Shown: positions 7,301 to 41,400 of the stretch, one piece after another
How positions within the stretch are numbered: the stretch's first letter is position 1
Layout of the letters: every line of letters starts with the position of its first letter
Source: Paragordius varius
Taxonomy: Eukaryota; Animalia; Nematomorpha
DNA length: 64,000 bases
Reading direction: 5' to 3'
NCBI GenBank assembly: GCA_964247055.1
Contig: OZ176053.1
Span: 6,696,001 to 6,760,000 of the forward strand
The notes under the pieces: generated by a model
Seen by the model: only the letters and a program-made list of their open reading frames with translations
What the model was told of the DNA's origin: nothing
The model's database searches: none
Position numbers and translations under genes: made by a program

Positions 7301-10300
7301 CGGTGTTTCAATTGCGACAAATGGAATCATTTCAGCACAGTATGCAAGGCATCGTTCCGACGGCCGTCAATCCGCACCATGACTAGCCCGAACAACACCC
7401 CCCGGATCCAAGTATTAATAAATAATATACCAACAACGTTTATCTACGATACGGGGGCCGAGGTATCCGTTATTGGCAAGCGCACTTGGGTAAATATTGG
7501 TCGACCTCGTTTGCTCCCAGCTCCAAATTTGCGAACCTACAATGATGGCCCGATAGAAGTACTCGGAAAATCGATGATTTCAGTGGTTTTGAACGAAGAG
7601 GAGAAGTGCCTGCCCTGCGTGGTGACGCAAACTAACCCGCCAGCCGTGTTCGGGATGAATTGGATGCGGGCGTTTCGGTTAGAATTCCCAAAAAATGTTT
7701 TTTAAGTTTTACATACGCAAGCACCTAATAATAAAATGTTATTTGATTGTTTTGACAAATTGTTTTCAGACGAGTTAGGTACTTTCAAGGGGCCCCCAAT
7801 AAAATTATTTATCGACCCCGGGTCCAAACCTAAAGTTTTTCCTTGTCGTAGGGTACCTTTAACTCTAAAACCTTTAGTAGAAAATGAAATTAATAGATTA
7901 AAACTCAAAATACTCCGACCTATCGATCCGACCCAAACCCCAATAACATGGGCCTCTCCCACAGTAAATATAATTAAAGGAAATGGAGAAATTAGGATAT
8001 GTGCCGATTTCCGAATTAGTATCAACCGTTATTTAGCAAAGGATTCTCATCTGATACCTACTTTTGACGAGTTGGCCACCAAAGTGGCAAATGGGATAAT
8101 TTTTTCCACTTTAGACCTGAAAGATGCTTACCTACAATTTCCGATAGACCGGGTCACAGACGCTAGTAACCATCACAACTCACAAAGGGTTTTATGCTTA
8201 CCAACGACTTCCATTCGGATTAACTTCAGCACCTATGATCTTTCAAAGATGCATGGACAATCTTTTAAAGGACATACCTGGTATTTGTGTGTACCTGGAT
8301 GATGTCTTAATTTCCGGAGTTACCAGGGAGGAACATGATCAAAGATTAAGGGAAGTATTTAGAAGGTTACAAGAGGCGGGATTACGATTGCGCCGAGACA
8401 AATTGCAAATTGGCATCTCACGAGTCAAATACATGGGGTACGTGATTTCTGACCAAGGTATTGAGCCGTCCAATGAAAAATTAGAGGCGATTAAAAATTG
8501 TCCGACACCTACAAACAAAACTGAGCTTGGTTCGTTCTTAGGCTTAATAAATTTTCATAAGCGGTTTATACCAAACTGTCACCCACACCTAGCAACCTTA
8601 CACAAGTTAAGTGGAAAGAATACACCGTGGCGGTGGACCCCGGCAGATGATAGTGAATTCGCGAAAGCAAAAAGCTTGCTAACCAGGCCCCCCGCTTTAA
8701 TGCCATTTAACGACCGTTTGCCCTTGTTGATCGAAACAGATGCTTCCAACAAGGGGTTTGGGGCAATACTGTTTCATAAGACCCCACAGGGGAAACGCCC
8801 AATTTTTTACGCGTCACGAACTTTTTCAATAGCAGAAAAGGGTTATTCCACGATAAAAAGAGGCCAAGGCCATAGTGTTTGCCCTAGAAAAATTTAAATA
8901 CTTTATATATGGAAGATCGTTCGAGATATATACAGATCATAAACCGCTGGTGTCACTATTTGGGCGGAAGAGAGATATCAACAACATTAATAATAGCAAA
9001 CTGCTCAGGTGGATATCAAATACCATCGGGTACGAGTATGAAATATTTTACAAGAAAGGGGAAAAAACTTAGCCGACGCGTTGTCGAGACTTCCAATAGA
9101 GCATAGCCAACCAGATGATGAAGATGACGCGGCCACCAAGCAGGTACGATTTTTGGCTCTAAAAACGCTGGATGTAAATAAGAAAGTGGTCGAAGAGGCA
9201 ACGATCACTGACCAACGGTTATCAAATAAAAATGCTCTCAGGACAAACAGTTGGATCGACGAGGATCTGAAACCTTTTTTAAAACATAAAAACGACTTGG
9301 AGTGTTGTTATAATCTGTTATACCTGAATGATCGCTTAGTGATACCACAAGCGATGCAGGAAGCGATATTGAAACTTCTGCATGTGGGACACAGCGGGCT
9401 AAAAACAATGAAAGCCCAAGCCCGGTGTTCGGTATTTTGGCCCGAATTAGACACCGATCTAGCGAATTATGTGGAAAGGTGCGAGGCTTGCCAAACCTAT
9501 CGACCTAACGCACCTGAAAATCTTCCCTATCGATGGAATTTTAACACTTTGACATGGGAAAGGTTACATATAGATGTTGCTGGACCGGTGGACGGATATT
9601 ATTGGTTAGTGAATGACTATCGATAGCGCCTAACGGTGGGTAGAGATAGATCTTCTTAAATCAATAACGAGTCAAAGCGTTTTAAATTGCCTGGAAAAAC
9701 ACATCGCACGATTTGGTTTTTCCCGCCAAATTGTGACCGATAATGCCACGTATTTTACTTCAAGAGAATTTACGACTCTCCTAAATCAGATAAATATAAA
9801 GCACATCTGTGCAGCACCGTATCACCCCAAAACAAACGGTCTAGTAGAGAGAGTAATAAAGACATTAAAAACGAAATACGCCGCTACTAAGACCCAACAA
9901 ATGCATGCATATGAAGCTATCAACACGGTCCTTTATTCGTATCGAACTAGCATGCATCTTCGCTAAAAGAAACGCCTTTCGCCATATTCCTAAAACGGCG
10001 TGTACACAATCCTATCTCTTGGGTAAAAACAACCCCTGTCGAATTTATAGAGCACGAAAATGAACCGAGACGCGAATTCCAACAAGACGATCCTGTCTAT
10101 ATTAAAAATGAAATAGCCTTAGGCTGGCGGCCAGGTCACATTCGGGAGAGAAGCGGGTTACTCTCGTATGAAGTGCAAGATGAGGAAGGGATTCGAAAAC
10201 GTAAACATGCAGATCAGTTACGACGTAGGTCAAGAGGGAATTCATACGAAACTAATCCCTTAATAGAGCATAAATATCCCAGCGTCGAAAGTGTCCCGGG

Positions 10301-13300
10301 TCATGTCGAGGGAGCCCACTCCGAACAAACCTTCCATCCCACCTCGGAATCTCAAATAGTCCATGCCCCAACTCCTGCTACCTCATGGCAAGACGTAGCC
10401 CCAGAATCGCTGACGCCTATAGAGGCCACACCCGACGTGGTAAAGGAGATTTCTGACCTACCCGAGCGTAGATATCCGCTAAGAAGACGGCAGCCTCCCG
10501 ATCGTTTAAACTTATAGGTATAATGTACGAACACGACAGCCCCCGTGGTTAACTTAGGGGGAAAGTAATGTAAGGTTATAATATTCTATTTTGTTAACAC
10601 CCTCAATTCATGTTGCATCAGTTATTTTGTATTTGAATATTATATATATACCTTTTCCCAGTCTAAATAAACGTTTTCCCAGTCAATCGAAACATTTTCC
10701 CAATCAATCGAAACGTTTTCCCAGTCAATCGAAACGTTTTCCCAGTCAATCGAAACATTTTCCCAGTCAATCGAAACGTTTTCCCAGTCAATAGAAACAT
10801 TTTCCCAGTCAATAAAAACATTTTCCCAATCAATAAAAACGTTTTCCCAGTCAATAAAAACGGTTTTATTTTTGATGATAAATATCAAAACAAGACATAA
10901 AAATAACTTTCAACTATTATCAGCGCAATATTAGAATATTATTTTTTTATAAAAACACAATTATTGAATGACCATTTTCCAAGTATATTCCAGTGCACAT
11001 CATTAATGATTTATTCTTTAAAAATCATATTTTTGGAATTTGAGATGTATTTGCATTATTTGCGGCTAACTTACAAATATAGTTACGGATGAAATATTAA
11101 AAATAAAAATAATATACCATTTTTATCTCAAAGGTCATTTAACACTTCATATTGGAATTTTATAATATTTATCATTTCATCGGGTGCCCAACTCGGCGTG
11201 CCGAGTATCTTTGTGCGGCCCGCGAAAAATTTGGAAATCCATATGCAATATGCCCACAAAATCTTAGTAATATTCATACTTCTTTCGCAATTATTCTGAA
11301 TGAGTCTATTAAATTGGCAACAAATTAAAAAAAATGTTATATTTTTGTATTTTACAGTCTTATGTCTAATCGAAAAATTATTAATGAAATACATCAAATG
11401 CGGAACGCTGTGCTTTTTGAGTAATGCGGCCCGCGAAGCCCTTTGGTTAGACACCCCTGTTTTCTAATATCTTTTTATTAATTTTTTTTTAATCAAAAAC
11501 ATTTTTATCGAAAAAATTTTTGTTTAAATATTTTTTCCGACAGTATTTTTATAGAAAAACTTAAAAAGTTTAGAGACTGTTTTGAAGCTTTCGGCAAATA
11601 TTAATGCGAACTATCAATAAATCAAAAAATATTATCTTAAATACATCTCAAATTCCAAAAATTAATTTTTAAAGAATAAGTGATTAATGATTGTGCACTG
11701 GAATATACTTGGAAAATGGTAATTTAATGATTGTGTTTTTATAAAAAAATAATATCCTAATATTACGCTGATAATGGCTGAAAGTTATTTTTATGTCTTG
11801 TTTTGATATTTATCATCAAAAATAAAACCGTTTTTATTGACTGGGAAAACGTTTTTATTGATTGGGAAAACGTTTCGATTGACTGGGAAAATGTTTCGAT
11901 TGACTGGGAAAACGTTTCGATTGATTGGGAAAATGTTTCGATTGACTGGGAAAACGTTTATTTAGACTGGGAAATGGTATATTTCGTGTTAAAGCTTATC
12001 TGTTGTTGAGAATAACCATTGTGTAACGTCTATGCAAATAAGGCATGCACAAATAAAAAGAACTTGTGATATAATAGCCAGTCATCTTTTTTATTTTGGT
12101 TTTCTTTTTATCGCTCTACTCTATTTTAATATACCATATTGCTATACGTGAATAAATCAACTATACACATATGGTTTTGGTTATTTTGCCGGTATAATAT
12201 TCATCAACTACTGATTGTTTGTGGTAGTATGTTAGACTATTATTAAGTATATATATAGTTTTGTTCATACCAAGTTAAAACTAATTAATTATCATTTTAA
12301 AATATTATTATATTTTTTTCCATATGAAGAATCAAACTGATTATAAATGTTTTGGATTAAAATGTGTAAGAAAACCGACAAATTTAACTTCGAGTTGGGG
12401 AAGCTGGAGTGCTTGGAGTCCCTGCAATGGAAACTATCACGTAGGAATCAGGGCCAAACGAAGACGATGTGAATACGATAGCGACTATGCACCACCGTGT
12501 CAGGGAAAACCATTAAAAATCAAGACATGCTTGCTAAAAGTATACATTCTAAAAATAGAGTTTATTTTTGGCCAATTGGTAGGTAATAAAATAGCGTATG
12601 AGTATAAAAACAAATAGTTGAAATTACAATTTTTTACCATATTAAATTTTAGTTAATGGACCAAATTGTTTTCTATCATAAGTATAATTACTATTGGCCA
12701 ACAATATTAAGAAATGATCAACATTATGTCCATACTGTATTTGAGTTAGATACTTAAACAACCGTTCTTTCCACCCTTATTTATAGGCTTTTATTGAAAA
12801 AATTGGCATAACCATAATTCTAGAGTATTATGAGTTCTGGTAGGAACCAGATTCTGTAAGTCAATTTATAATTATTTCATCCGACAAAAATATTAAATAT
12901 ATTTTTCTCGCCATTTAATGAATTAGCACATAAAGATAAAAACGACATTTCATTTTGACTTTTGGTAGAATGGCTAATTCAGATGTGTAATATATGCGTG
13001 CGCATATAATAAAGTTTATACCCGGTACAATTTTTTATGACTGTATGTGTCGCTGTTAACACTGGGCAGGCTAGTGATAAATAATTTATTGTTCTTAAAA
13101 TAATAAAAATATAACAACGAGATATTCTACACTGTAATTAAAATATAATTTAAATTCTCTATCCAAAATTTAAGAATGTTAGTATCTTTTCCAATACATG
13201 AAACTAAAAACAAATGAATAATATTGATAAATTTTTTTAAAACTAAATGCAGTAGCCTATGGCATAAAACACTATTAGTCCATAAAAGAATAAAAAATGT

Positions 13301-24861: not shown

Positions 24862-25049
24862 CAGTATGAGTAAGTATACATTGCTAATATTAATTTCCAA
24901 ATAGCATATACAACAAAGGGCAGTATTATTGGCCTTTAGTTATTTTTCCCTTTGTAACATAATTAGCCAATGAAAACTCTCTTTGCTGCATATACTATTT
25001 GGCAATAATAAAGAACTTTCTAGCAATATATGTATACTTATTCATACTG
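24862..25049. mobile_element. Tc1/mariner-type MITE (TA-CAGT…ACTG-TA)
   Basis: ~27-bp TIRs plus an internal inverted pair; TA on both sides. Confidence 0.8.
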
Positions 25050-25161
25050 TATATTAAAAAAATTTAACAAGTATAGCGGCGATCTTTTGAAAAAAATATA
25101 TCTTCTTTATTATTTTACATTTCGACTGTTATAACTGTCAATTTTCAATATAAATTAAATA

Positions 25162-26712
25162 TTATACGCATAGACAATCTTCGACTGATAAATCAACTTC
25201 GTAATATCGAGTCTTTTGGCATACTATAACGTTGCCGATCGTACGGTGTTTACGTTCACAACTTGAAGATCTATTTTATTTATTATTATATAAGAATAAA
25301 GAATTAAAATTTAAATTAATTCTTCGGATATAACGGATCAATTAAATTGATTGTTTTAAATTCATCCTAAATTAGTTTTAATCATTGGTCTCTTATTGTA
25401 TTTATATAGTCAAACTTAATTGGATTATTATATAACTGAAGAAAAACATAAGATATTTTTAGATTAGTCGGGGTGAAGTAGTTTATGTTTTCGACAAATT
25501 ATTTCGTTAATATTTAAAATAATGTGTTAATTTAATATTTAATCGCGAGTATTTAGTTGAACTTGAGATATCTGATAATTATAAATGAAATTTGCTAAAA
25601 ATTGTGCATAATATGACACAAAATCAAATAAGTTTTGAAATACATACCGTTGACATGAAACCCATTTAATGTCTTGACGGAAGGTCGGCGTGTTTACAAT
25701 GTATACCAAACCTCGGACCGGATGGTCAAAGCATCTCACATCAACCACACTTTCAATACAATTTTCTCCATATCTGCAAGAGGGGATAAACATCAATTTT
25801 TAAAACTTTAATATAAAGTTTATACGTTGTATAATGGTATAATTTTTATAATTATAAGGGTAGGTATCGTTTTTAACTTATGACCTGAAAATCTGGTATC
25901 ACTTTACATAATATGATGTGCTTATTACAATTAAAATAAACTTTAGCAATTTATGATTTCCTTAATTTTTGGAAGATCTTAGGTTGATAATTGTTTAATT
26001 ACCATAAAAATATGATTATAAAAGTATAAATAAAATTATTTTTTGTTATGATTATTAAAAAAATATTTAGTATTATATATGATTAATTTTAAACTTGCTC
26101 AAATAATTAATAAATCATTTAGTTCAGGGGTGATCTCATTGCCGCTGCTTTGATAATTTTTGGTTTTTTATTTATGTATGATATATCTTTTAAATAATCT
26201 TAAATTTTTGAATAAAATCAAATTTTTCATTTTTTTAACATTCTTAAAGGACCTTCGCGTACCAAAAAAAACGTGTTGGATTCCTGATTTAGTGTTTTCT
26301 ACTTATTTCGAATATTAATAAATTCATATTATAAAGGCTTCAAATTTGACTTATTTGTTGGAAAATTAACACATTTAAGGCGCTAGTTCAGTTAATTATT
26401 TATATGGTAACTAAGTTACTCGGAACATATGTCATACGAATTGACTTGGGATCTTCTACTAATTTGTCCAATGTCTCTATCCCATTGACTAAAAAAGAAG
26501 CATGTCAAAAATCCATATAATTTATATTTTAATAGTATATGATTGTAACTTTTGGAAGGTATTTACTTTCGATACGAATTATATCCTAAACAGTTGCTGC
26601 GCCCTTCAGTTTCATTTGATATCTTTATGGGATCAATTTTCTCGATCGCGATGCTAAAACATCCTTTCAAGGTGACACAAATCAGGAACGTGAATAAAAT
26701 TATTTTAACCAT
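25162..26712 (-). CDS. Secreted cystine-knot protein B (NGF/Spaetzle-type spacing), 126 aa, 3 exons
   Basis: Exons 26712-26567, 25773-25648 and 25270-25162 with canonical GT-AG phase-2 introns; signal-like MVKIILFTFLICVTLKGCFS; ends VEDCLCV*; clear paralogue of 27250-29864. Confidence 0.85.
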
Positions 26713-27249
26713 TTACTTAGAATTTCAATACAATTATTATATTATAATGTTTTTTGATTCAAACAAAAAGGTTGAGTAAGTTTTTTTCGTACTATATATA
26801 GTCTCGTAAATTTGTTCAATGATAATGATAACAATATAACGGGAAAGGATGTTTCTCATAAATATTAGATAAATTATGACAGATACATATGTATAGTATA
26901 ACTTTACAATGATATGTTTTGAATTCACATTACATAAGATCAAGTACAAGTTTGGCATTTCACGATTCAAGGACAAATATGGTTTTAACATTTTAACCAC
27001 CAAAGTTAACACAACACAGAGCAATAGATTGAATTTGGAATTAATTCTAATCAATTAAAAATATATGTACAGGGTAGACATCTATATATATGCCCAAAAA
27101 ATTAAGGTTGTCAAATAGGTATGTCTAAAGTTAACAAATATAGTAGTTGTTAAAAGGAAATGGATCAAAAAGCTTTAATATATATAATAAATATAACGTA
27201 TAAAACACTAAGATTTCATTTAAAACTAATTTTTTTTATCTTATCAATC

Positions 27250-29864
27250 ATGCTGTTTTGTACAACAAAATCTTTGTTATTCATAACATCCTGCCTTATT
27301 GTGGTAACGTATACCGAACTCCCCATGAACATATATCAGATATCTGCCGTTTATAAATTGGGGTCCCAGGCTAACGAGGGGCGAACAAATTGTCCTTATG
27401 TTAAACAACTTGAAAGGTATTTTTAACATTTATATTATGAAAAAGAATAATGCAACTTTTTTTTCGTATCGAATCAATTAAAAAAATTTAAATTTGAACT
27501 ATAATAATGTGAAAGGCATTGAAAAATTGGATTAAGTTTAATCTTGTCGCTAATTATGCAACTTTTGATAAATATATAATCCATTGATTGGTAATTAATA
27601 CTGTACATATGAACAATTTATGCACATCAAACCTTAGGAAAATTGGATTTATGAATTCTAACCGGATAGATTTTAACTCTTTACACATGGTAACGATTTA
27701 GGTAGAAAAAAGCGGTTATTTTTTTACAATTTAAAATTGACTGTCGTTTGTCTTATAAACATGGTCTAACATCTAATGCAAATGACTTAAATAATTAAAA
27801 TAATTTAACATAGTATTGGTATGGAAGTGGATAGTTTTTAATTGATTAAATGGCTAATGATGCCATTGATAATCTATCTCAGAATTAACAAACAACCTGT
27901 TCCTTTTGTACTTTTTAATATATAATGCGAATGTACGATCTTTTCACGACAATGTATAATGACATATACTGACTGTGTATTCAGGGTTTTAAAAAAATTA
28001 CCCCGAGAATGATAATATTTGGGTTTACCATGGTATACACCCGACTCCTAATAAAATTTCTATTGCATTTTAAAGGGCTTTATAACCCATAAATGATAAA
28101 GCTATCTGACTAGATAAAATGCCTGAACAAATGAAAAATAAATAAAACCTATTTAAAACAGGGGTGTTCAATACAAATGGCATAGCAGGCAGCATTTTTG
28201 ACTCAAAAAAATCGGCGGGCCGCATTGAATATTTATATATATATATATATATATATATAAGCCTTCATAAATATTATATTAGATTTCAAACATACTGTGA
28301 AATACAAACACAATGTAACGAATTTTCTAGTTCGTTGTTGCCAATTGAATAATAGCCTTATTCAAAATTTGTATAATATAAACATTCTTAGATTTTATGA
28401 ACATATACTTTCAAATTATTAATTCAAAATTTTTAACGGGCCGCACAAATTGTCTCGAAGGTCCGCATGCGGTCCGCGTACCGCGTGTTAGACACCCCTC
28501 TCTAAACATTAAAGCATAAAGCGTATTTTTATAGTTATTTACAATGGACAAAAAAATTCAAAAATTTATTTTCTCGGATTTATTTTTCTGCAAAAATGGC
28601 ATTTTACGGGGACGGATAAATAGAGCGTCTAATTCCAAATCGGGCATTTATAAAGTGATTTAAAAAAATAAAAATTTCACCCTTTTGGGTTTGATAAGGA
28701 TTGCACGTTTCCCGGATGTTAAATTTTTCCAAGGAAATTGTTTTTTATCAAAATAAATTTTATATAATATTCATGCAGCGAGTGGAACAAACAATTTACC
28801 AAGAATCTGAGTGATTCAGACGAAAAACCATCAATGATTGCGCGAAGATCCTGTAATAAGTAAGATTTAAATTTCCCGTAAAATAATAATAATAATAATA
28901 GAATCTTTTCCTGTTGAATAGCATTCGTTCAAAATATAGCATATAAATCTTTTTAAAATTCTCTTAAATTAAATTATTAGACTGAATTTGCAGTCTGAAA
29001 TTTAATTTTCCAAAAAGTTTTGGTAAATCACAATTTTTAATTTATATAAATCTTTATTTTAGTCTGGGCGCACCTGAATTATGACAATGTTCTAATTAAA
29101 TTGTTTTTTAAGTTAGCAAACTAAAAATTAGACCATAACAAAACGACTTTATTATGAAAAACAAAACTAATTTTTTTAAATTAATAACTATTTTGAATTT
29201 TGTTTATGCGTTTTGCTATTCATCTTTCTTACCTTTTACTAAATTATTAAAAATAATAAGATTTACGTCTTCCCTTCATGTCCGCGCTAAGCATATTTTT
29301 AAGCTAATTTTTTTTTGAATTTGTAGAATATCTCCAAAAAATAAAGAAATTTTCTCTTATTTATTTTAAACATATTTAGATTTAGTAGTGGATCTTGTGA
29401 TGTTGATGTAGTACATGTAAAATGTTTTAATCATCCGGTTCATGGGTTACTTTATGTATTAAATACTCATTTTTTCCGACAGGAAGTTATATGGGCATCT
29501 TGTAAAAAGTAAGATTTTAGCTATATTATACCATTTTTCCTTCTAAAGTGTCCTTCAAATTAGCATTAAAACATTTATACAGTTTTCTTAAAAACCTCTG
29601 GCCCTTTACACAAGGGTCCCACTCGAAGTGTTAAAAGACACTCTTGAAGTGCAAATGAGTTATGCACAAAAATGTTAAAATCATGATTATAATAATTATT
29701 AAACTCTTTCTTTTAGCCCAAACGAACCGTGCCAAAGATATGACACAGAAACTGGAACGAATTGTGTCCAAACATTTTGTTCACTAAAAAATGTTTTAGT
29801 TACGAACGGTAAAAAATATTTTTGGATACCACTTCATGTGGAAGATTGTGTATGCTCCAAATAA
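27250..29864 (+). CDS. Secreted cystine-knot protein A (neurotrophin/Spaetzle-like), 147 aa, 3 exons
   Basis: Exons 27250-27416, 29380-29508 and 29717-29864; signal-like N-terminus; six knot Cys spaced 34/6/10/27/1 (NGF: 42/9/11/27/1); NGKKYFWIPLHVEDCVC resembles NGF DGKQAAWRFIRIDTACVC. Gene structure is more certain than the family call. Confidence 0.85.
28159..28500. mobile_element. hAT-type MITE in intron 1 of cystine-knot gene A
   Basis: CAGGGGTGTTCAA…TTAGACACCCCTC with GCGGGCCGC motifs; TSD not clean. Confidence 0.7.
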
Positions 29865-29923
29865 ACTTATTTTAAAAATAAATTAAAAAATGTTTAATTT
29901 TATTATATTGCATATATACTAAT

Positions 29924-31309
29924 TTATTCATTTGCATTGGCATTCGAAACATTTGTGGCATATGTGGATTTCGTGAGTGATAAAATACTGCCTTTTCGCA
30001 CAATACCAAGCGTTTGTCGCAACGCATTACGAATATTTCGATCAAATGACATATATACATAAAAGTTTAGGGTATAAAAAGAAAGTTCCAAGAAGTCAGA
30101 AATACTGATGATAGAATCTTCTTCAATGGCCGCTGCGATTACAACTATGTTTGGAGTTTCTAGGAATAAATACATGGTGAAATAGATGAGGGCTGATATA
30201 TTTCGTGTATACATTTTGTTAGTTTTCTTTGGAGTGATTACAGTGCGATTCCTTTCAGTACTTAAGTTTGATGGGGTTAAATGTTTTGGACTATCATTTG
30301 CTTTTGGTTGATTTTGATTAAGATTTAGTGTGTTTCTGGTGCTTGATTGAGACATCTGTGGAAATGTTTTTCGCGTTGTTTTGCGCAGACTGTACCTCAA
30401 CAAATAAAATGTTATACCAGTACCAAATACTAAAATGCAAACCCCAGGAATGCCTGATAATATGACCATACGTGCAACATCGTATTTCTTTATCCATGGA
30501 ATATCCGTAAAAGTATTGTAATATCTGGTGGACACTGCAAATTTAAATGATTTATTCGTTGACATTACATCACAAAAGAGTGAAGCATTTAAACCGGTTG
30601 GATAAGATTTAATCATTTCTGACTTCGTGGGTTGTATAAATAGGCATTCATTAGTTTCATACCAAAAATAACTGCTAAAACTGGCACCAATTGATAAAAT
30701 AATGAAAAATGTACAGATTAGTATTAAAGGATTCAAACATGATGAAAAACTAGAGCGTGGGTTTAGCATACGCTGTATAAAATTGGTGTATCTCAGGGAG
30801 CTGTGTAGCAAGAAAAAACGGTCAGCCAGTAAAAGTGCCAACATAAAAATGGAGCCTGCAAAACACCCATTAAGTATTATAAGGACATATCGGCCCCTAA
30901 ATATCAACCAATTCCTATGAACAACTAAATCAACCCTTGTATACTTGCGTATATCATCGGCTAAAGTCATGGTTGCCATACAAATGGTTATGAGATTCAA
31001 GACCGCAATAATTTGTAAAAGTGTATAATATATCTTATTGTTGTTACTGATGTATGTGGTGCGAGAACTTGTATCAGAATTTCCACTTGCACCAGATGAT
31101 CTACCCCGTTTCATTTGTCGAATGAGATAAAGACCCATGAGATTGCCCACAGCACCGATAACTAAAAAAATGGGCGTTATAATAATGTACAAAATGACGG
31201 AATAGTCACGAAACGATGTAGCAGCCTTATCCCTATTACATAGGAGGGTGTCGTTTTCAATGTCATCTTTGCGACAAACATTTTGGTAAATTTCGTACAA
31301 TTTTGACAT
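29924..31309 (-). CDS. Intronless class A GPCR, orphan peptide-receptor type (FMRFamide/myosuppressin-receptor-like motifs)
   Basis: 461-aa ORF with 7 hydrophobic segments; TM1 GN, TM3 DRF, TM6 ETP, TM7 LNFYVY. Confidence 0.9.
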   Translation of the reverse strand: MSKLYEIYQNVCRKDDIENDTLLCNRDKAATSFRDYSVILYIIITPIFLVIGAVGNLMGLYLIRQMKRGRSSGASGNSDTSSRTTYISNNNKIYYTLLQIIAVLNLITICMATMTLADDIRKYTRVDLVVHRNWLIFRGRYVLIILNGCFAGSIFMLALLLADRFFLLHSSLRYTNFIQRMLNPRSSFSSCLNPLILICTFFIILSIGASFSSYFWYETNECLFIQPTKSEMIKSYPTGLNASLFCDVMSTNKSFKFAVSTRYYNTFTDIPWIKKYDVARMVILSGIPGVCILVFGTGITFYLLRYSLRKTTRKTFPQMSQSSTRNTLNLNQNQPKANDSPKHLTPSNLSTERNRTVITPKKTNKMYTRNISALIYFTMYLFLETPNIVVIAAAIEEDSIISISDFLELSFYTLNFYVYMSFDRNIRNALRQTLGIVRKGSILSLTKSTYATNVSNANANE

Positions 31310-38463: not shown

Positions 38464-41400
38464 TTAAAAAGCATATCGCGTCCTTATATCCTCCAATTTT
38501 TTGGATACTTCATTTGGCGTCCGATCTAATTCTTCAGCTATACTCCTTTGTTTGGCATAATCCAAGGCATTAAATTGTTCACATAAATCTCCATCTACGA
38601 TATTTTTTACAGGGAAATAATAGGAACGGAAAGAAAGATGGTCCCGACCCACTAAACTAATGTTTTCGGCTCGCATATGCATTTCAAGATGCTGGAAAAA
38701 ATCGTAATCTTCGTGCGAAGTAAAGGGGAGAAGTAAACCGATTGTACCTAAATGTACGCGCAATATTATTGCCTTATAAAATCATTTTATTTAAATTGTG
38801 ACAAATCAGATTTTCATGAATAAAACTTTAATATATTTCCAATATAATTTTGTATCGTCAAGTGTAAATAAACATTTTTAAAACATTTATGAATAATCTA
38901 AAAGCCATTAATCTCCTATGAATACATGAATTAAGAAATATCATATCTTTTTGTCCATCATATAATTTAAAATATATAAATAACAATTATAAATAAAAAC
39001 TACGATGAAAAAAAACTCTTACCCGATAACGTTGTATAAAGGAGACATTCAAACCCCCCGGGAACAAGGGTAGCTTTTTGCAGTGAAGTTATCGTTTCTC
39101 CCACGTAAAAATGGGCAATCTCTTGGGCTTTTTGTCCAAACAAACCAATCCTATCCCATATAGATCTATTACCGGCTGGATCTTCGTCCGTTAAATTGTC
39201 ATTTATGTTTTGAGGGAGTCTAACAACCGCAAAATTTCCAAATTTATCAGCCAATGCTACAGTGTTGTAATCGAGTAAAAGGGAGGTGTTATTCCACCAA
39301 GGTATAGTCATGTCAGCAAAAGCAACTAATGTATTTTCACGAGATCTAAAACAATAATATGGTATATGTTTTCTAGGTAAAATTACAGGTATATATTTGA
39401 TATCCTGCATAATGATTAATTGAATTGGTATTTTAATATATTATAACAATATACTAATAATACTAATTTGTAATTTATCGCATTCCAAATAATCTAATTA
39501 TATACAGTGTCTTCCCTCAGTGATGCCACAATATTGGCATTATAATCTTTTTTCAGATTAATTAAAATTGTATTATAGAATTCTAATATAATTTTATAAA
39601 TATAATTAAAAAGAGTCCATTGCATTTGTTTAAGTTTATTTGAATAAAATATAATGATAAGAAAAGGTCAATAATATAATTACGAATTTGTCAAATTACC
39701 TATAACGCAAAAAGTGTATTCCATGTTGAATGTCTGCTACAAAAACACGAGATCCAAGTGTTTCGATTTTAACTACGGTAGTAGGGATGGATTTGTTTTC
39801 ACATTTTCGCAACAATTTTCGTCGACCAAGTTCATAAATACGAATATACCTCCCAACACCCACTAAAATGCGTCCCTAATTTAGGAAATAATAATAGTTT
39901 AATAATGTAAGCCAAATTTTGCGGCCCAAAACAAACCATAATCAAAAAGCAGTATATATGGTATTAACAAAAAATGGAACAAAAAGTTTGCCTCATATTT
40001 CTCAAATTGGCTGAAAAAAAATTTAAAAACTTCATACATATACTCTATTTTTTAAAAAATGTCAAACTATGAGAAAACCTCTAATATAAACCAATTTATA
40101 CCCAAAAATTCTGATACATTTATTTAGATACCATATCATTTATTAAGCGTAAGTTAACCTGAAACGGCGTTATAACTGAAGGAATATCCTCCACCATAGT
40201 TTTGTGCAAGAAATCTAGCTTGGCTTCGCGCCATAAAAATGTGTACAGGAAACCGCCAGTGTTTTCCTTGCTTATGAGATTGAAATCACGCACTACTCCA
40301 ACCACCAAATAGAGTTCGTGAGGGGAACGATTCGAAAACCGAACGCCGCAAAGAGAAACAGCTGATTCGTTTTGTGGAAGGGGAACGACCGTGCCTTCTT
40401 GTTCTGCAACGGAAACTCCAGCCTCCCCACTCACTGAAAGACCAGTAAGTCCGGCAGATCGTGCAGGTAGGACCTAGGCAAAAGGTTAATTTGATAATAT
40501 AAATGTTTTTATTTCATTAGAAACTTTGAACTTAATAAACCACAGTGTCTCTTTAATAAGCTAAAAAGTTGAATGAGTCACATTATGTGAATATTCAATT
40601 TTTTATATAGTCATTCTTAGACACCATATGCTAAAATTTATTGCATAACATCAAATTTACTATGATATAAATTATAATTCAATCTCTTTCACCACGACAT
40701 TTTAAATTTGCCAATATATGTTGGGAAACTTGTTTTAGCTTAAATTAACATTGGATAGATGTATTACCCTAATTTGCGAGGCCCACATAGCGGTACCCGC
40801 TTTAGGAGACCCAAAAAGTGCTTCCGGAAGTTCTTCGTTCAAAAAAGCAGCCGCCATTTCAGCAGCCAACTCTTTTTCGTTTTGAGCGGCTGATCGGACC
40901 ATCTCTTCAGCCATTTGCTGGCGACGGATGCGTTGACTTTCAGCCGTGTAAGCATTGTGCTCCGATTCGATTAAAGCCAGAGTACCGGATTCGTGATTCA
41001 CGACAAAACGTCGAGGGGTATATCTGAGAGCAAAAATAAAAAAAGGAAATTGTAAAATAATAAAGATAAAAAATCAATTGTGTTCAAAAAACCTTTTTAT
41101 ATCAATAAATAAAAAAATAATAAATTGGGAGATATGAGGAACATAAAATATGTTTAATCCCATAACGTTTGGTCGTTATACGTTATATATAAAATATATA
41201 ATTAGTTTTATTTTAAAATGACTTTTATTATTAATTTGCTGATATTTGCATCATATATTGAAATAAAACCTTATATTAAACACCCATTTATTTTGAAAAG
41301 TGGTAAAAATGATTAAGTATTTAGTATCCAAAAATAATACCCATAAAAATTGGATAATTATGTATTTCTTGTTGTTCAAAACTAACTAATGGGTTAAAAT

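Follow-up and report, generated by a model that had tools for sequence, protein, structure and literature searches.

Neurotrophins, IL-17 cytokines and Spaetzle proteins are the systems with which the gene pair described here is compared. In NGF, the knot cysteines are spaced 42/9/11/27/1. IL-17 proteins are encoded by genes of 3-4 exons, have a short N-terminus without a pro-domain, and carry the motif R-x-P..I.EA.C....C and a terminal C-x-C; Cys I and Cys IV of the knot are replaced, which leaves a four-cysteine partial knot. Insect Toll receptors function in immunity and in neurotrophin-like signalling in the brain. In Spaetzle, six knot cysteines that end in C-x-C are paired I-IV, II-V and III-VI within a beta-hairpin fold like that of NGF, and the disulfide-linked dimer binds a Toll receptor. 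Spaetzle precursors contain a long pro-domain that is removed by the Spaetzle-processing enzyme or by furin (PMC9427763). A survey of ecdysozoan immunity reported Spaetzle in panarthropods only and proposed that ligand-driven Toll activation originated there; in the hairworm Paragordius, the survey detected a Toll-type receptor (mccTLR), with Spaetzle undetected and none of the Toll pathway's intracellular members found (PMC7056985).

The window analysed here, a 64-kb stretch of Paragordius varius DNA, contains two genes, A and B. In evidence for them are the exon-intron structure, their relation as paralogues, conservation in a second species, N-termini that resemble signal peptides, and a cysteine framework. 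A and B are likely to be real, anciently duplicated and divergently transcribed genes for small secreted pro-proteins with a cystine-knot framework of the Spaetzle/neurotrophin type.

Gene models and age of the duplication

Gene A (plus strand) and gene B (minus strand) occupy positions 25162-29864 in the head-to-head, opposite-strand arrangement described in an earlier note on this DNA, with divergent directions of transcription and start codons 537 bp apart. Neither gene had been annotated previously. The earlier note assigned three exons to each gene; these exons are indeed open and bordered by canonical splice sites, but a small extra exon inside intron 1 was missed. Very probably, each gene consists of four exons, given that a small in-frame exon within each intron 1 matches exon 2 of the homologue from Gordionus (P0002, see below). 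The features are as follows.

27250..27416, plus strand: A exon 1, 167 nt; start codon, signal peptide, short pro-segment and conserved E-G-R-T-N-C; ends in phase 2, donor GTATTT
28779..28859, plus strand: A exon 2, 81 nt; acceptor CAG, donor GTAAGA, both borders in phase 2; S-E-W at the start, R-R-S-C-N at the end
29380..29508, plus strand: A exon 3, 129 nt; Cys I of the knot plus one further Cys, motif Y-V-L-N-T / F-R-Q, Cys II
29717..29864, plus strand: A exon 4, 148 nt; Cys III, Cys IV with V-Q behind it, one further Cys, terminal V-E-D-C-V-C
26713..27249, no strand: inter-start region, 537 bp, GC 23.6%; TATA-like runs near 26793-26801 and 27083-27092
26567..26712, minus strand: B exon 1, 146 nt; start codon, signal peptide, pro-segment including E-G-R-S-N-C; phase 2 at its end, donor GTAAAT
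26420..26488, minus strand: B candidate exon 2, 69 nt; acceptor TTTTTTAG, donor GTAACT, both borders in phase 2; Q-W at the start, R-R-S, and a Cys near the end
25648..25773, minus strand: B exon 3, 126 nt; Cys I plus one further Cys, motif Y-I-V-N-T / F-R-Q, Cys II
25162..25270, minus strand: B exon 4, 109 nt; Cys III, the Cys of G-N-V-I-V-C-Q (common to P0002), terminal V-E-D-C-L-C

All exons of both genes are open frames with canonical AG/GT borders, and the introns (78-1362 nt) are all GT..AG, all in phase 2 and at matching positions; the same positions and phases had already been recognised for the two introns of the three-exon models, which are in phase 2 in both genes and at equal alignment positions. 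The exon sizes of P0002 are 140/78/129/145 nt. The revised products comprise 174 aa for A and 149 aa for B, or 126 aa for B without the small exon. When the exon-2 peptide of P0002 is run by tblastn against the whole window, exon 2 of A ranks first (E=0.037). The case for the small exon of B is weaker and less certain: the same peptide matches positions 26431-26466 on the strand of B (tblastn of the window, rank 4, E=2.6), and the candidate donor is apparently displaced 26 nt downstream compared with P0002. An in-frame ATG further upstream, at position 27160, offers A another possible start, and the stop codon of A is overlapped by AATAAA. The 537-bp region between the start codons is presumed to be a shared or adjacent promoter of the divergent pair. 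A search of the 64-kb window for a further paralogue found none.

In blastp, the three-exon products of A and B align over 107 aa with 36% identity (E=1.4e-22), in agreement with the paralogy claimed earlier, for which the quoted motifs are also correct. The proportion of nonsynonymous differences is 0.37-0.44 (pN), and that of synonymous differences is 0.82-0.86 (pS). Because synonymous sites are saturated, dN/dS is not estimable and the duplication is old, not a recent inverted one.

Protein architecture and family assignment

The only detectable homologue of A and B is the 'uncharacterized protein LOC135923903' of Gordionus sp. (P0002; GCA_954871325.2, OX940784.2), annotated with four exons, to which A is 42% (E=2e-47) and B 38% (E=9e-32) identical over the full length. 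When 1.84 billion representatives are searched exhaustively with a profile, a single relative emerges at E<=0.001 and arthropod Spaetzle does not; A and B are absent from a collection of 15 billion proteins; and a word-indexed homologue search retrieves nothing with the three-exon product of A and only P0002 itself with P0002. The family is so far known from the present genome and the hairworm Gordionus only. Like A and B, P0002 has four exons with every intron in phase 2 (the third exon being 129 nt long, as in A), a signal peptide, a G-R-S-x-C motif and a terminal V-E-D-C-x-C. Unlike them, it is a single gene, with neither a head-to-head partner nor a paralogue in the 10 kb flanking it on each side; its locus shows no synteny with the window around A and B, and its introns are 44-58 nt long.

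The N-termini of A, B and P0002 are hydrophobic over 17-22 residues, with acceptable small residues at -1 and -3 (a heuristic assessment), and are signal-like, as originally noted. Some 21-23 residues lead from the signal peptide to a conserved G-R; this segment, which ends in G-R-[S/T]-[N/Q]-C in three of the three family members, is all that occupies the place of the long neurotrophin pro-domain, whose absence had been correctly pointed out. A dibasic furin site was sought in A, B and P0002 and is present in none, nor is a known Spaetzle-processing site. The pro-segment is followed by a Cys-rich domain of about 110-130 residues with the C-terminal framework I-V-N-T...Q...C-x5/6-C-x10-C-x-Q...C-x-C, as in cystine-knot cytokines of the Spaetzle/neurotrophin type. 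In A and P0002, all six knot positions are present with Spaetzle-like spacing (34/6/10/27/1 in A, the value given earlier and correct on recheck). Exon 4 of B is devoid of a segment of about 11 residues that in A and P0002 bears Cys IV and the next Cys; B accordingly has no cysteine at position IV, and another Cys stands 12 residues past Cys III. After predicted signal cleavage, A contains 10 cysteines and B 9 or 10, depending on the cleavage site, and the 11 cysteines of the mature part of P0002 are the union of those in A and B.

A Pfam search with the three-exon products of A and B and with P0002 identifies similarity of A, residues 78-132, to the Spaetzle profile PF16077 with E=2.3e-4 and 22.2 bits, below the gathering score of 27 bits; P0002 matches the same part of the profile (E=0.012, 16.6 bits), again below the cut-off. 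Spaetzle is the only cystine-knot family among the Pfam matches of these two proteins, and the B product has no Pfam match. A search of 177,635 PDB sequences with a profile of P0002 and the exon pieces returns a sole match, Aedes Spz1C (7B1B/7B1C, chain D, E=0.19), which lines up with the query at I-V-N-T, at Q, at Cys II, at K-P-C and at Cys IV. Single exon pieces give no signal in Pfam or PDB. When Atlas language-model features are compared, with all scores below 0.9, a Spaetzle cluster ranks first for B exon 3 (0.89, 179 of 256 features shared), Spaetzle clusters rank first and NGF second for A exon 3, and A exon 4 reaches the cystine-knot clan only. A 60-residue Spz1C fragment used as the query for Spaetzle sequences has no match in the length range searched. 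The matches of A, B and P0002 are not independent, since all three are homologous. An AlphaFold2 model of P0002, built on a shallow alignment three species deep, has pLDDT 33.9 and pTM 0.25 and contains only a C-terminal hairpin; at this confidence, the cystine-knot fold is one that we infer. Of the families named earlier for a profile check, Spaetzle is matched weakly, whereas NGF (Pfam profile or NGF-family PDB chain, A and P0002 as queries, E<=10) and IL-17 are not matched. Judging from these three weak but convergent results, each of them sub-threshold, A, B and P0002 probably belong to a Spaetzle/neurotrophin-like cystine-knot family, as distant relatives of insect Spaetzle, the Toll ligand. 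The earlier assignment to such proteins thus holds to the extent that the only family signals, from Pfam, the PDB profile and language-model features, all agree, but every score is sub-threshold and B has no Pfam match.

Alternative readings

The exons of the pair have a GC content of 36.5% against 25.4% in the introns, and the chance of an exon being open in such AT-rich DNA is 1.6-6.7% per exon. Every one of the eight exons is open, with splice sites intact and in phase, so that the earlier remark on frames that stay intact despite strong divergence applies to the four-exon models as well. The stop frequency is 7% per codon, and neutral decay over the time implied by saturated synonymous sites would therefore have broken the frames. 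The exonic variants seen in DNA runs comprise three synonymous changes, one conservative K>R and one in-frame 3-nt deletion: K52R at 27404 and the deletion at 27319 in A exon 1, and changes at 28779 and 28782 in A exon 2, both synonymous in the proposed frame; in B exon 3, the change at 25686 (P78P). The intact frames and these variants, along with the conserved motifs kept in B, make it very improbable that one or both genes, B more readily than A, are unexpressed relics, even though the 11-residue deletion in B takes out Cys IV, its exon 2 resembles the homologue weakly and has a displaced donor, and the few small RNA runs of the species (1-30 million letters) contain no contigs over the locus, which indicates neither expression nor silence. 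A bidirectional promoter might also drive the two genes together, with their products joining in an obligate heterodimer that serves as the ligand, comparable to bursicon or GPA2/GPB5. The head-to-head start codons 537 bp apart, the persistence of both genes since an old duplication and the general tendency of cystine-knot ligands to dimerise (PMC9427763) are compatible with such a ligand, but the Gordionus gene lacks a partner in the 10 kb to each side of it, and the predicted cysteine counts do not speak for a covalently linked A-B dimer: the even number in A (10) leaves no obvious free Cys for the link. An obligate heterodimer appears unlikely.

With respect to ancestry, A and B could represent a lineage-specific secreted Cys-rich family unrelated to Spaetzle, the weak matches being due to convergence in Cys pattern or composition. 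All family scores below threshold, a single relative among 1.84 billion representatives with no arthropod Spaetzle at E<=0.001, and the lack of a confident AlphaFold fold point in this direction. Nevertheless, we consider an unrelated origin improbable: a profile HMM, a PDB profile and language-model features, which differ in kind, place the same family first, and hallmark positions beyond the cysteines align, namely I-V-N, Q, Cys II-x6-Cys III after P, Cys IV followed by Q, and the terminal C-x-C. The initial guess was IL-17, from R-x-x..W.SC...C and the terminal C-x-C, and it was dropped because Pfam, PDB and Atlas favour Spaetzle and Cys I and Cys IV are kept. The motif F-R-Q-[ED]-[VI]-x-W-x-S-C-x5/6-C together with the terminal D-C-x-C resembles the IL-17 signature and serves as a lead only; in addition, IL-17 clusters are the most numerous among the Atlas matches listed (22-28 of 100), with lower scores, and the canonical Cys IV is absent from B, as in IL-17 proteins. 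Against this, the Pfam IL17 profile (PF06083) is unmatched by A and P0002 even at E<=10, zero IL-17 chains occur among the PDB profile matches at E<=10 although many such structures have been deposited, the two cysteines that IL-17 proteins replace, Cys I and Cys IV, persist in A and P0002, and Spaetzle clusters outrank IL-17 for both exon-3 pieces. It is thus quite unlikely that A and B are IL-17-type cytokines instead of Spaetzle/neurotrophin-type ones.

Predicted function and comparison with known systems

For the Spaetzle/neurotrophin-type reading, how A and B fold, are processed, dimerise and are expressed, and which receptor they bind, is predicted by analogy. Both proteins would be secreted, might be cut behind the conserved G-R by a trypsin-like protease, and would dimerise via the knot domain; they would then serve as ligands of a receptor of the Toll type (multiple-cysteine-cluster TLR) or of another LRR receptor. 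The mccTLR of Paragordius is a plausible partner for a Spaetzle-like ligand, although an endogenous Toll cascade is doubtful given that the survey found no intracellular pathway components (PMC7056985). Hairworms live in insects and change insect behaviour, so look-alikes of Toll ligands are of interest in these animals. Secretion of A and B into the insect host as cytokine mimics, which would engage host Toll receptors and damp immunity or aid behavioural manipulation, would explain ligands in a lineage without a detected intracellular Toll pathway (PMC7056985), but is highly improbable. If the family assignment is correct, a divergent, short, Spaetzle-like family in hairworms would place the origin of the ligand at least at the base of Ecdysozoa or represent an independent offshoot. 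Such a family would supply a candidate ligand for an orphan hairworm receptor and a minimal form without a pro-domain, useful for structural and signalling work. In such AT-rich genomes, small four-exon genes for secreted ligands are missed or left unnamed.

Among the known systems, A and B share with IL-17 cytokines (PF06083) the small secreted product without a pro-domain, the compact gene of few exons, the C-x4-6-C ... C-x-C arrangement and, in B, one missing knot Cys position; they differ in the lack of profile or PDB matches, the Cys I and Cys IV kept in A and P0002, and the lower Atlas rank. With neurotrophins (NGF/BDNF/NT3; PF00243), the likeness consists in the six-Cys knot framework of A, with spacing near that of NGF, and in the second place of NGF clusters in Atlas features; the differences are the absence of a furin-type R-x-K/R-R site and of a pro-domain of about 100 residues, and of NGF from the Pfam and PDB matches at E<=10. 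Compared with the Spaetzle family (PF16077; Drosophila Spz1-6/DNT1-2, Aedes Spz1C, PDB 7B1B), A and B are only 149-174 aa long in total and have no long unstructured pro-domain, with about 21-23 residues ahead of the conserved G-R; an extension of about 40 residues with two extra conserved cysteines lies ahead of Cys I, B is without the Cys IV segment, and scores fall under the Pfam cut-off. What they have in common with Spaetzle is predicted secretion, the I-V-N-T...Q motif ahead of Cys II, a C-terminal framework in which a Pro stands before Cys II-x6-Cys III, a Q comes after Cys IV and C-x-C closes the chain, and extra cysteines available for inter- or intrachain bonds. A and B can perhaps best be read as a short-propeptide form of a known ligand superfamily, new as such.

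The gene pair and its homologue in Gordionus

Gene A and gene B start with an ATG at 27250 (+) and 26712 (-), respectively, and in each gene the hydrophobic N-terminus is followed by three more open segments. Given that the two start codons are only 537 bp apart on opposite strands, the genes form a head-to-head pair, as proposed in the earlier note; there is no third copy within the 64-kb window. The start of gene A was placed at 27250, in preference to an upstream in-frame ATG, because gene B and the homologue from Gordionus (P0002) begin at the equivalent position.

27160-27249, + strand: upstream ATG segment in frame with gene A, would add 30 residues
27250-27416, + strand: gene A, exon 1
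28779-28859, + strand: gene A, exon 2; AG..GT, in frame, phase 2 in and out; starts with S-E-W, ends with R-R-S-C-N
29380-29508, + strand: gene A, exon 3
29717-29864, + strand: gene A, exon 4
26712-26567, - strand: gene B, exon 1
26488-26420, - strand: gene B, candidate exon 2; 69 nt, phase 2 in and out; begins with Q-W, R-R-S inside, late Cys
25773-25648, - strand: gene B, exon 3
25270-25162, - strand: gene B, exon 4

The earlier note modeled both genes with three exons, i.e., without exon 2, and most of what it read from these models stands. All exon boundaries are canonical (AG/GT), both introns are in phase 2 at equal alignment positions in A and B, and blastp shows the products (147 and 126 aa) to be paralogous (107 aligned residues, 36% identical; E=1.4e-22). 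The note gives the motifs and the spacing of the cysteines in gene A (34/6/10/27/1) correctly, and signal-like N-termini of 17-22 residues are present in A, B and P0002 alike. The GC content of the A and B exons is 36.5% vs 25.4% in the introns, and with stops at 7.25% of codons, the chance of an open frame is 1.6-6.7% per exon.

A search of 1.84 billion representative proteins with profile A1, built from translations of the two most conserved exons, identifies a single genuine relative, P0002 (163 aa, E=7.6e-15), an "unnamed protein product" or "uncharacterized protein LOC135923903" from the horsehair worm Gordionus sp. m RMFG-2023; two other matches were set aside as repetitive proteins. The P0002 gene resides on a 64.4-Mb chromosome (GCA_954871325.2; positions 10001-10643 of the extracted locus L001) and consists of 4 exons (140, 78, 129 and 145 nt) separated by three phase 2 introns (58, 44 and 49 nt). 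The window is strongly AT-rich (27.6% GC), with similar values for the P0002 locus (27.1%) and the Gordionus genome (26.93%). No head-to-head partner was found within 10 kb of the P0002 gene, and neither synteny between its flanks and the window nor shared repeats were detected. The introns of the P0002 gene are 44-58 nt long, whereas those of A and B, at equal positions, span 78-1362 nt and are partly filled with repeats. An insertion resembling a MITE, about 350 bp long (28160-28512), lies in intron 1 of A; its terminal inverted repeats start with AGGGGTGT, and a (TA)n run (28228-28260) adjoins it. Three segments (25000-25166, 28507-28673 and 29509-29675), the last of which is inside the last intron of A, have a word depth 50-300 times that of their neighbors in the DNA runs and are high-copy repeats.

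The exon 2 peptide of P0002, which starts with S-Q-W and ends with R-R-S-C-N, has no counterpart in the three-exon models. When all six frames of the window are searched with this peptide, 28779-28859 of gene A comes out on top (E=0.037); this segment also stands out, independently of P0002, by a donor region identical to that of the next exon in 19 of 21 positions. In gene B, the candidate exon 2 ranks fourth in the same search (E=2.6), and its donor has apparently moved 26 nt downstream from the ancestral position; it is therefore less certain to be a real exon than its counterpart in A. Each of the two genes very probably includes a small extra exon within the former "intron 1" and has four exons. 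The revised products (A, 174 aa; B, 149 aa) align with P0002 at 42% identity over the full length (A, E=2e-47) and at 38% identity (B, E=9e-32), and with each other at 32% identity (E=1e-22). Because the lengths of the small exons are multiples of three, the frame is kept when they are skipped, and the three-exon forms may be isoforms.

Next to gene A, a convergent intronless ORF of 461 aa (29924-31309, -; stop codons 59 nt apart) has about seven hydrophobic segments, the third of them followed by A-D-R-F, and in this resembles a rhodopsin-type GPCR of divergent sequence. Its Pfam search gives no match at E<=0.01, and the exact product is absent from the public gene collection. A 136-aa ORF (39003-39410, -) with a strong match to the CPSF_A domain (E=3.6e-18) is probably an exon of an SF3B3-like gene.

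Age and variation of the locus

Synonymous sites are saturated among A, B and P0002 (pS 0.82-0.86; pN 0.37-0.44), and by this measure the A/B duplication is old; despite this age, the two genes have kept their eight exons and twelve splice sites intact. Variation was read from two DNA-like runs, where the introns of the locus are densely variable. In particular, intron 2 of B contains a divergent haplotype block (26287-26413; at least 16 SNPs in 127 nt and several indels in runs X1 and X3) that ends a few bases short of candidate exon 2. Among the variants listed, the only exonic ones are the following:

25686, gene B (- strand): P78P, synonymous
28779 and 28782, gene A exon 2 (+ strand): both synonymous
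27404, gene A (+ strand): K52R
27319, gene A (+ strand): 3-nt deletion, in frame

This contrast between exons and introns is only suggestive. Neither the locus nor its spliced joints appear in the RNA-labelled runs of the species, which are all tiny, and this result bears on expression neither way. The locus is also contained in two runs labelled with other organisms (B and C), namely X3 (25000-30000, depth about 3-7), which shows no difference from the window over gene A, and X11 (26420-27416); these could represent worm DNA in host or environmental samples, or mislabelling.

Domain architecture and probable family

In agreement with the earlier note, the long pro-domain of neurotrophins is missing: the pro-segment of A, B and P0002 is about 21-23 residues long, shows an I-x-K-I-like pattern and ends in a strictly conserved G-R, which is followed by [S/T]-[N/Q]-C. 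The next stretch, of about 40 residues, carries two extra cysteines, both conserved and one of them encoded by the newly found exon 2, and leads into the knot region. Past the signal peptide, P0002 contains 11 cysteines and A contains 10, lacking the one in the P0002 segment G-N-V-L-V-C-Q; B lacks an 11-residue segment with Cys IV and the next cysteine, and has 9 cysteines after signal cleavage, or 10 if Cys18 is retained.

The motif preceding Cys II and the terminal C-x-C initially suggested IL-17, but Pfam, PDB and language-model features pointed elsewhere. The earlier note had named NGF, Spaetzle and IL-17 as profiles to compare; Spaetzle was matched, below the cut-off of 27 bits, whereas at E<=10 the IL17 and NGF profiles gave no match, nor did any PDB chain of an IL-17 or a neurotrophin. 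Specifically, Spaetzle (PF16077) is the sole cystine-knot family identified for the three-exon product of A (E=2.3e-4, 22.2 bits; residues 78-132 on profile positions 22-78) and the sole Pfam match of P0002, in the identical profile region (E=0.012, 16.6 bits); the three-exon product of B has no Pfam match. A search of all PDB sequences with profile A3 (P0002 and exon pieces) retrieves nothing at E<=10 but chain D of 7B1B and of 7B1C (E=0.19), that is, Aedes aegypti Spaetzle1C in Toll5A complexes (PMC9427763), in an alignment that pairs I-V-N-T, the next Q, Cys II, K-P-C (Cys III) and Cys IV. By language-model features, exon 3 of B scores 0.89 and has 179 of 256 features in common with a cluster that is 74% PF16077, where by the tool's own yardstick at least 170 features at such a score are typical of true family members. 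The same Spaetzle clusters rank first for exon 3 of A (score 0.75), and for the exon 3 pieces Spaetzle is followed by NGF clusters and then IL-17 clusters; for the last exon of A, only members of the cystine-knot clan are found. Individually, these three lines (Pfam, PDB and language-model features) are weak, and they have homologous queries in common, yet they are of different kinds and agree. We consider it likely, from sequence comparison, that A, B and P0002 are cystine-knot proteins of the Spaetzle/neurotrophin type. An AlphaFold2 model of P0002, from an alignment three species deep, has a pLDDT of 33.9 and does not confirm the fold.

Proposed function and comparison with known Toll ligands

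Spaetzle is a secreted, proteolytically activated, dimeric ligand of Toll (PMC9427763). By analogy, A and B would be secreted ligands that a trypsin-like protease may trim after the conserved G-R, and their dimers would engage a receptor of the Toll type or another LRR receptor. The heterodimer envisaged in the earlier note finds no support, in its covalent form, in the predicted cysteine counts; these counts leave room for a non-covalent A-B heterodimer. That the worm secretes such ligands to act on the Toll receptors of its insect host appears very improbable.

Neither A nor B is present in a collection of 15 billion proteins, so that both are unannotated genes, possibly simply for want of a public annotation of this genome. 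In a published survey of immune genes across Ecdysozoa, Spaetzle was detected in panarthropods alone; the hairworm Paragordius varius yielded a multiple-cysteine-cluster Toll-like receptor, but Spaetzle and the intracellular Toll components were not found in it (PMC7056985). Against this background, A, B and P0002 would constitute a divergent, pro-domain-less, Spaetzle-like hairworm family, new within a known ligand superfamily, that bears on the evolution of Toll signalling.
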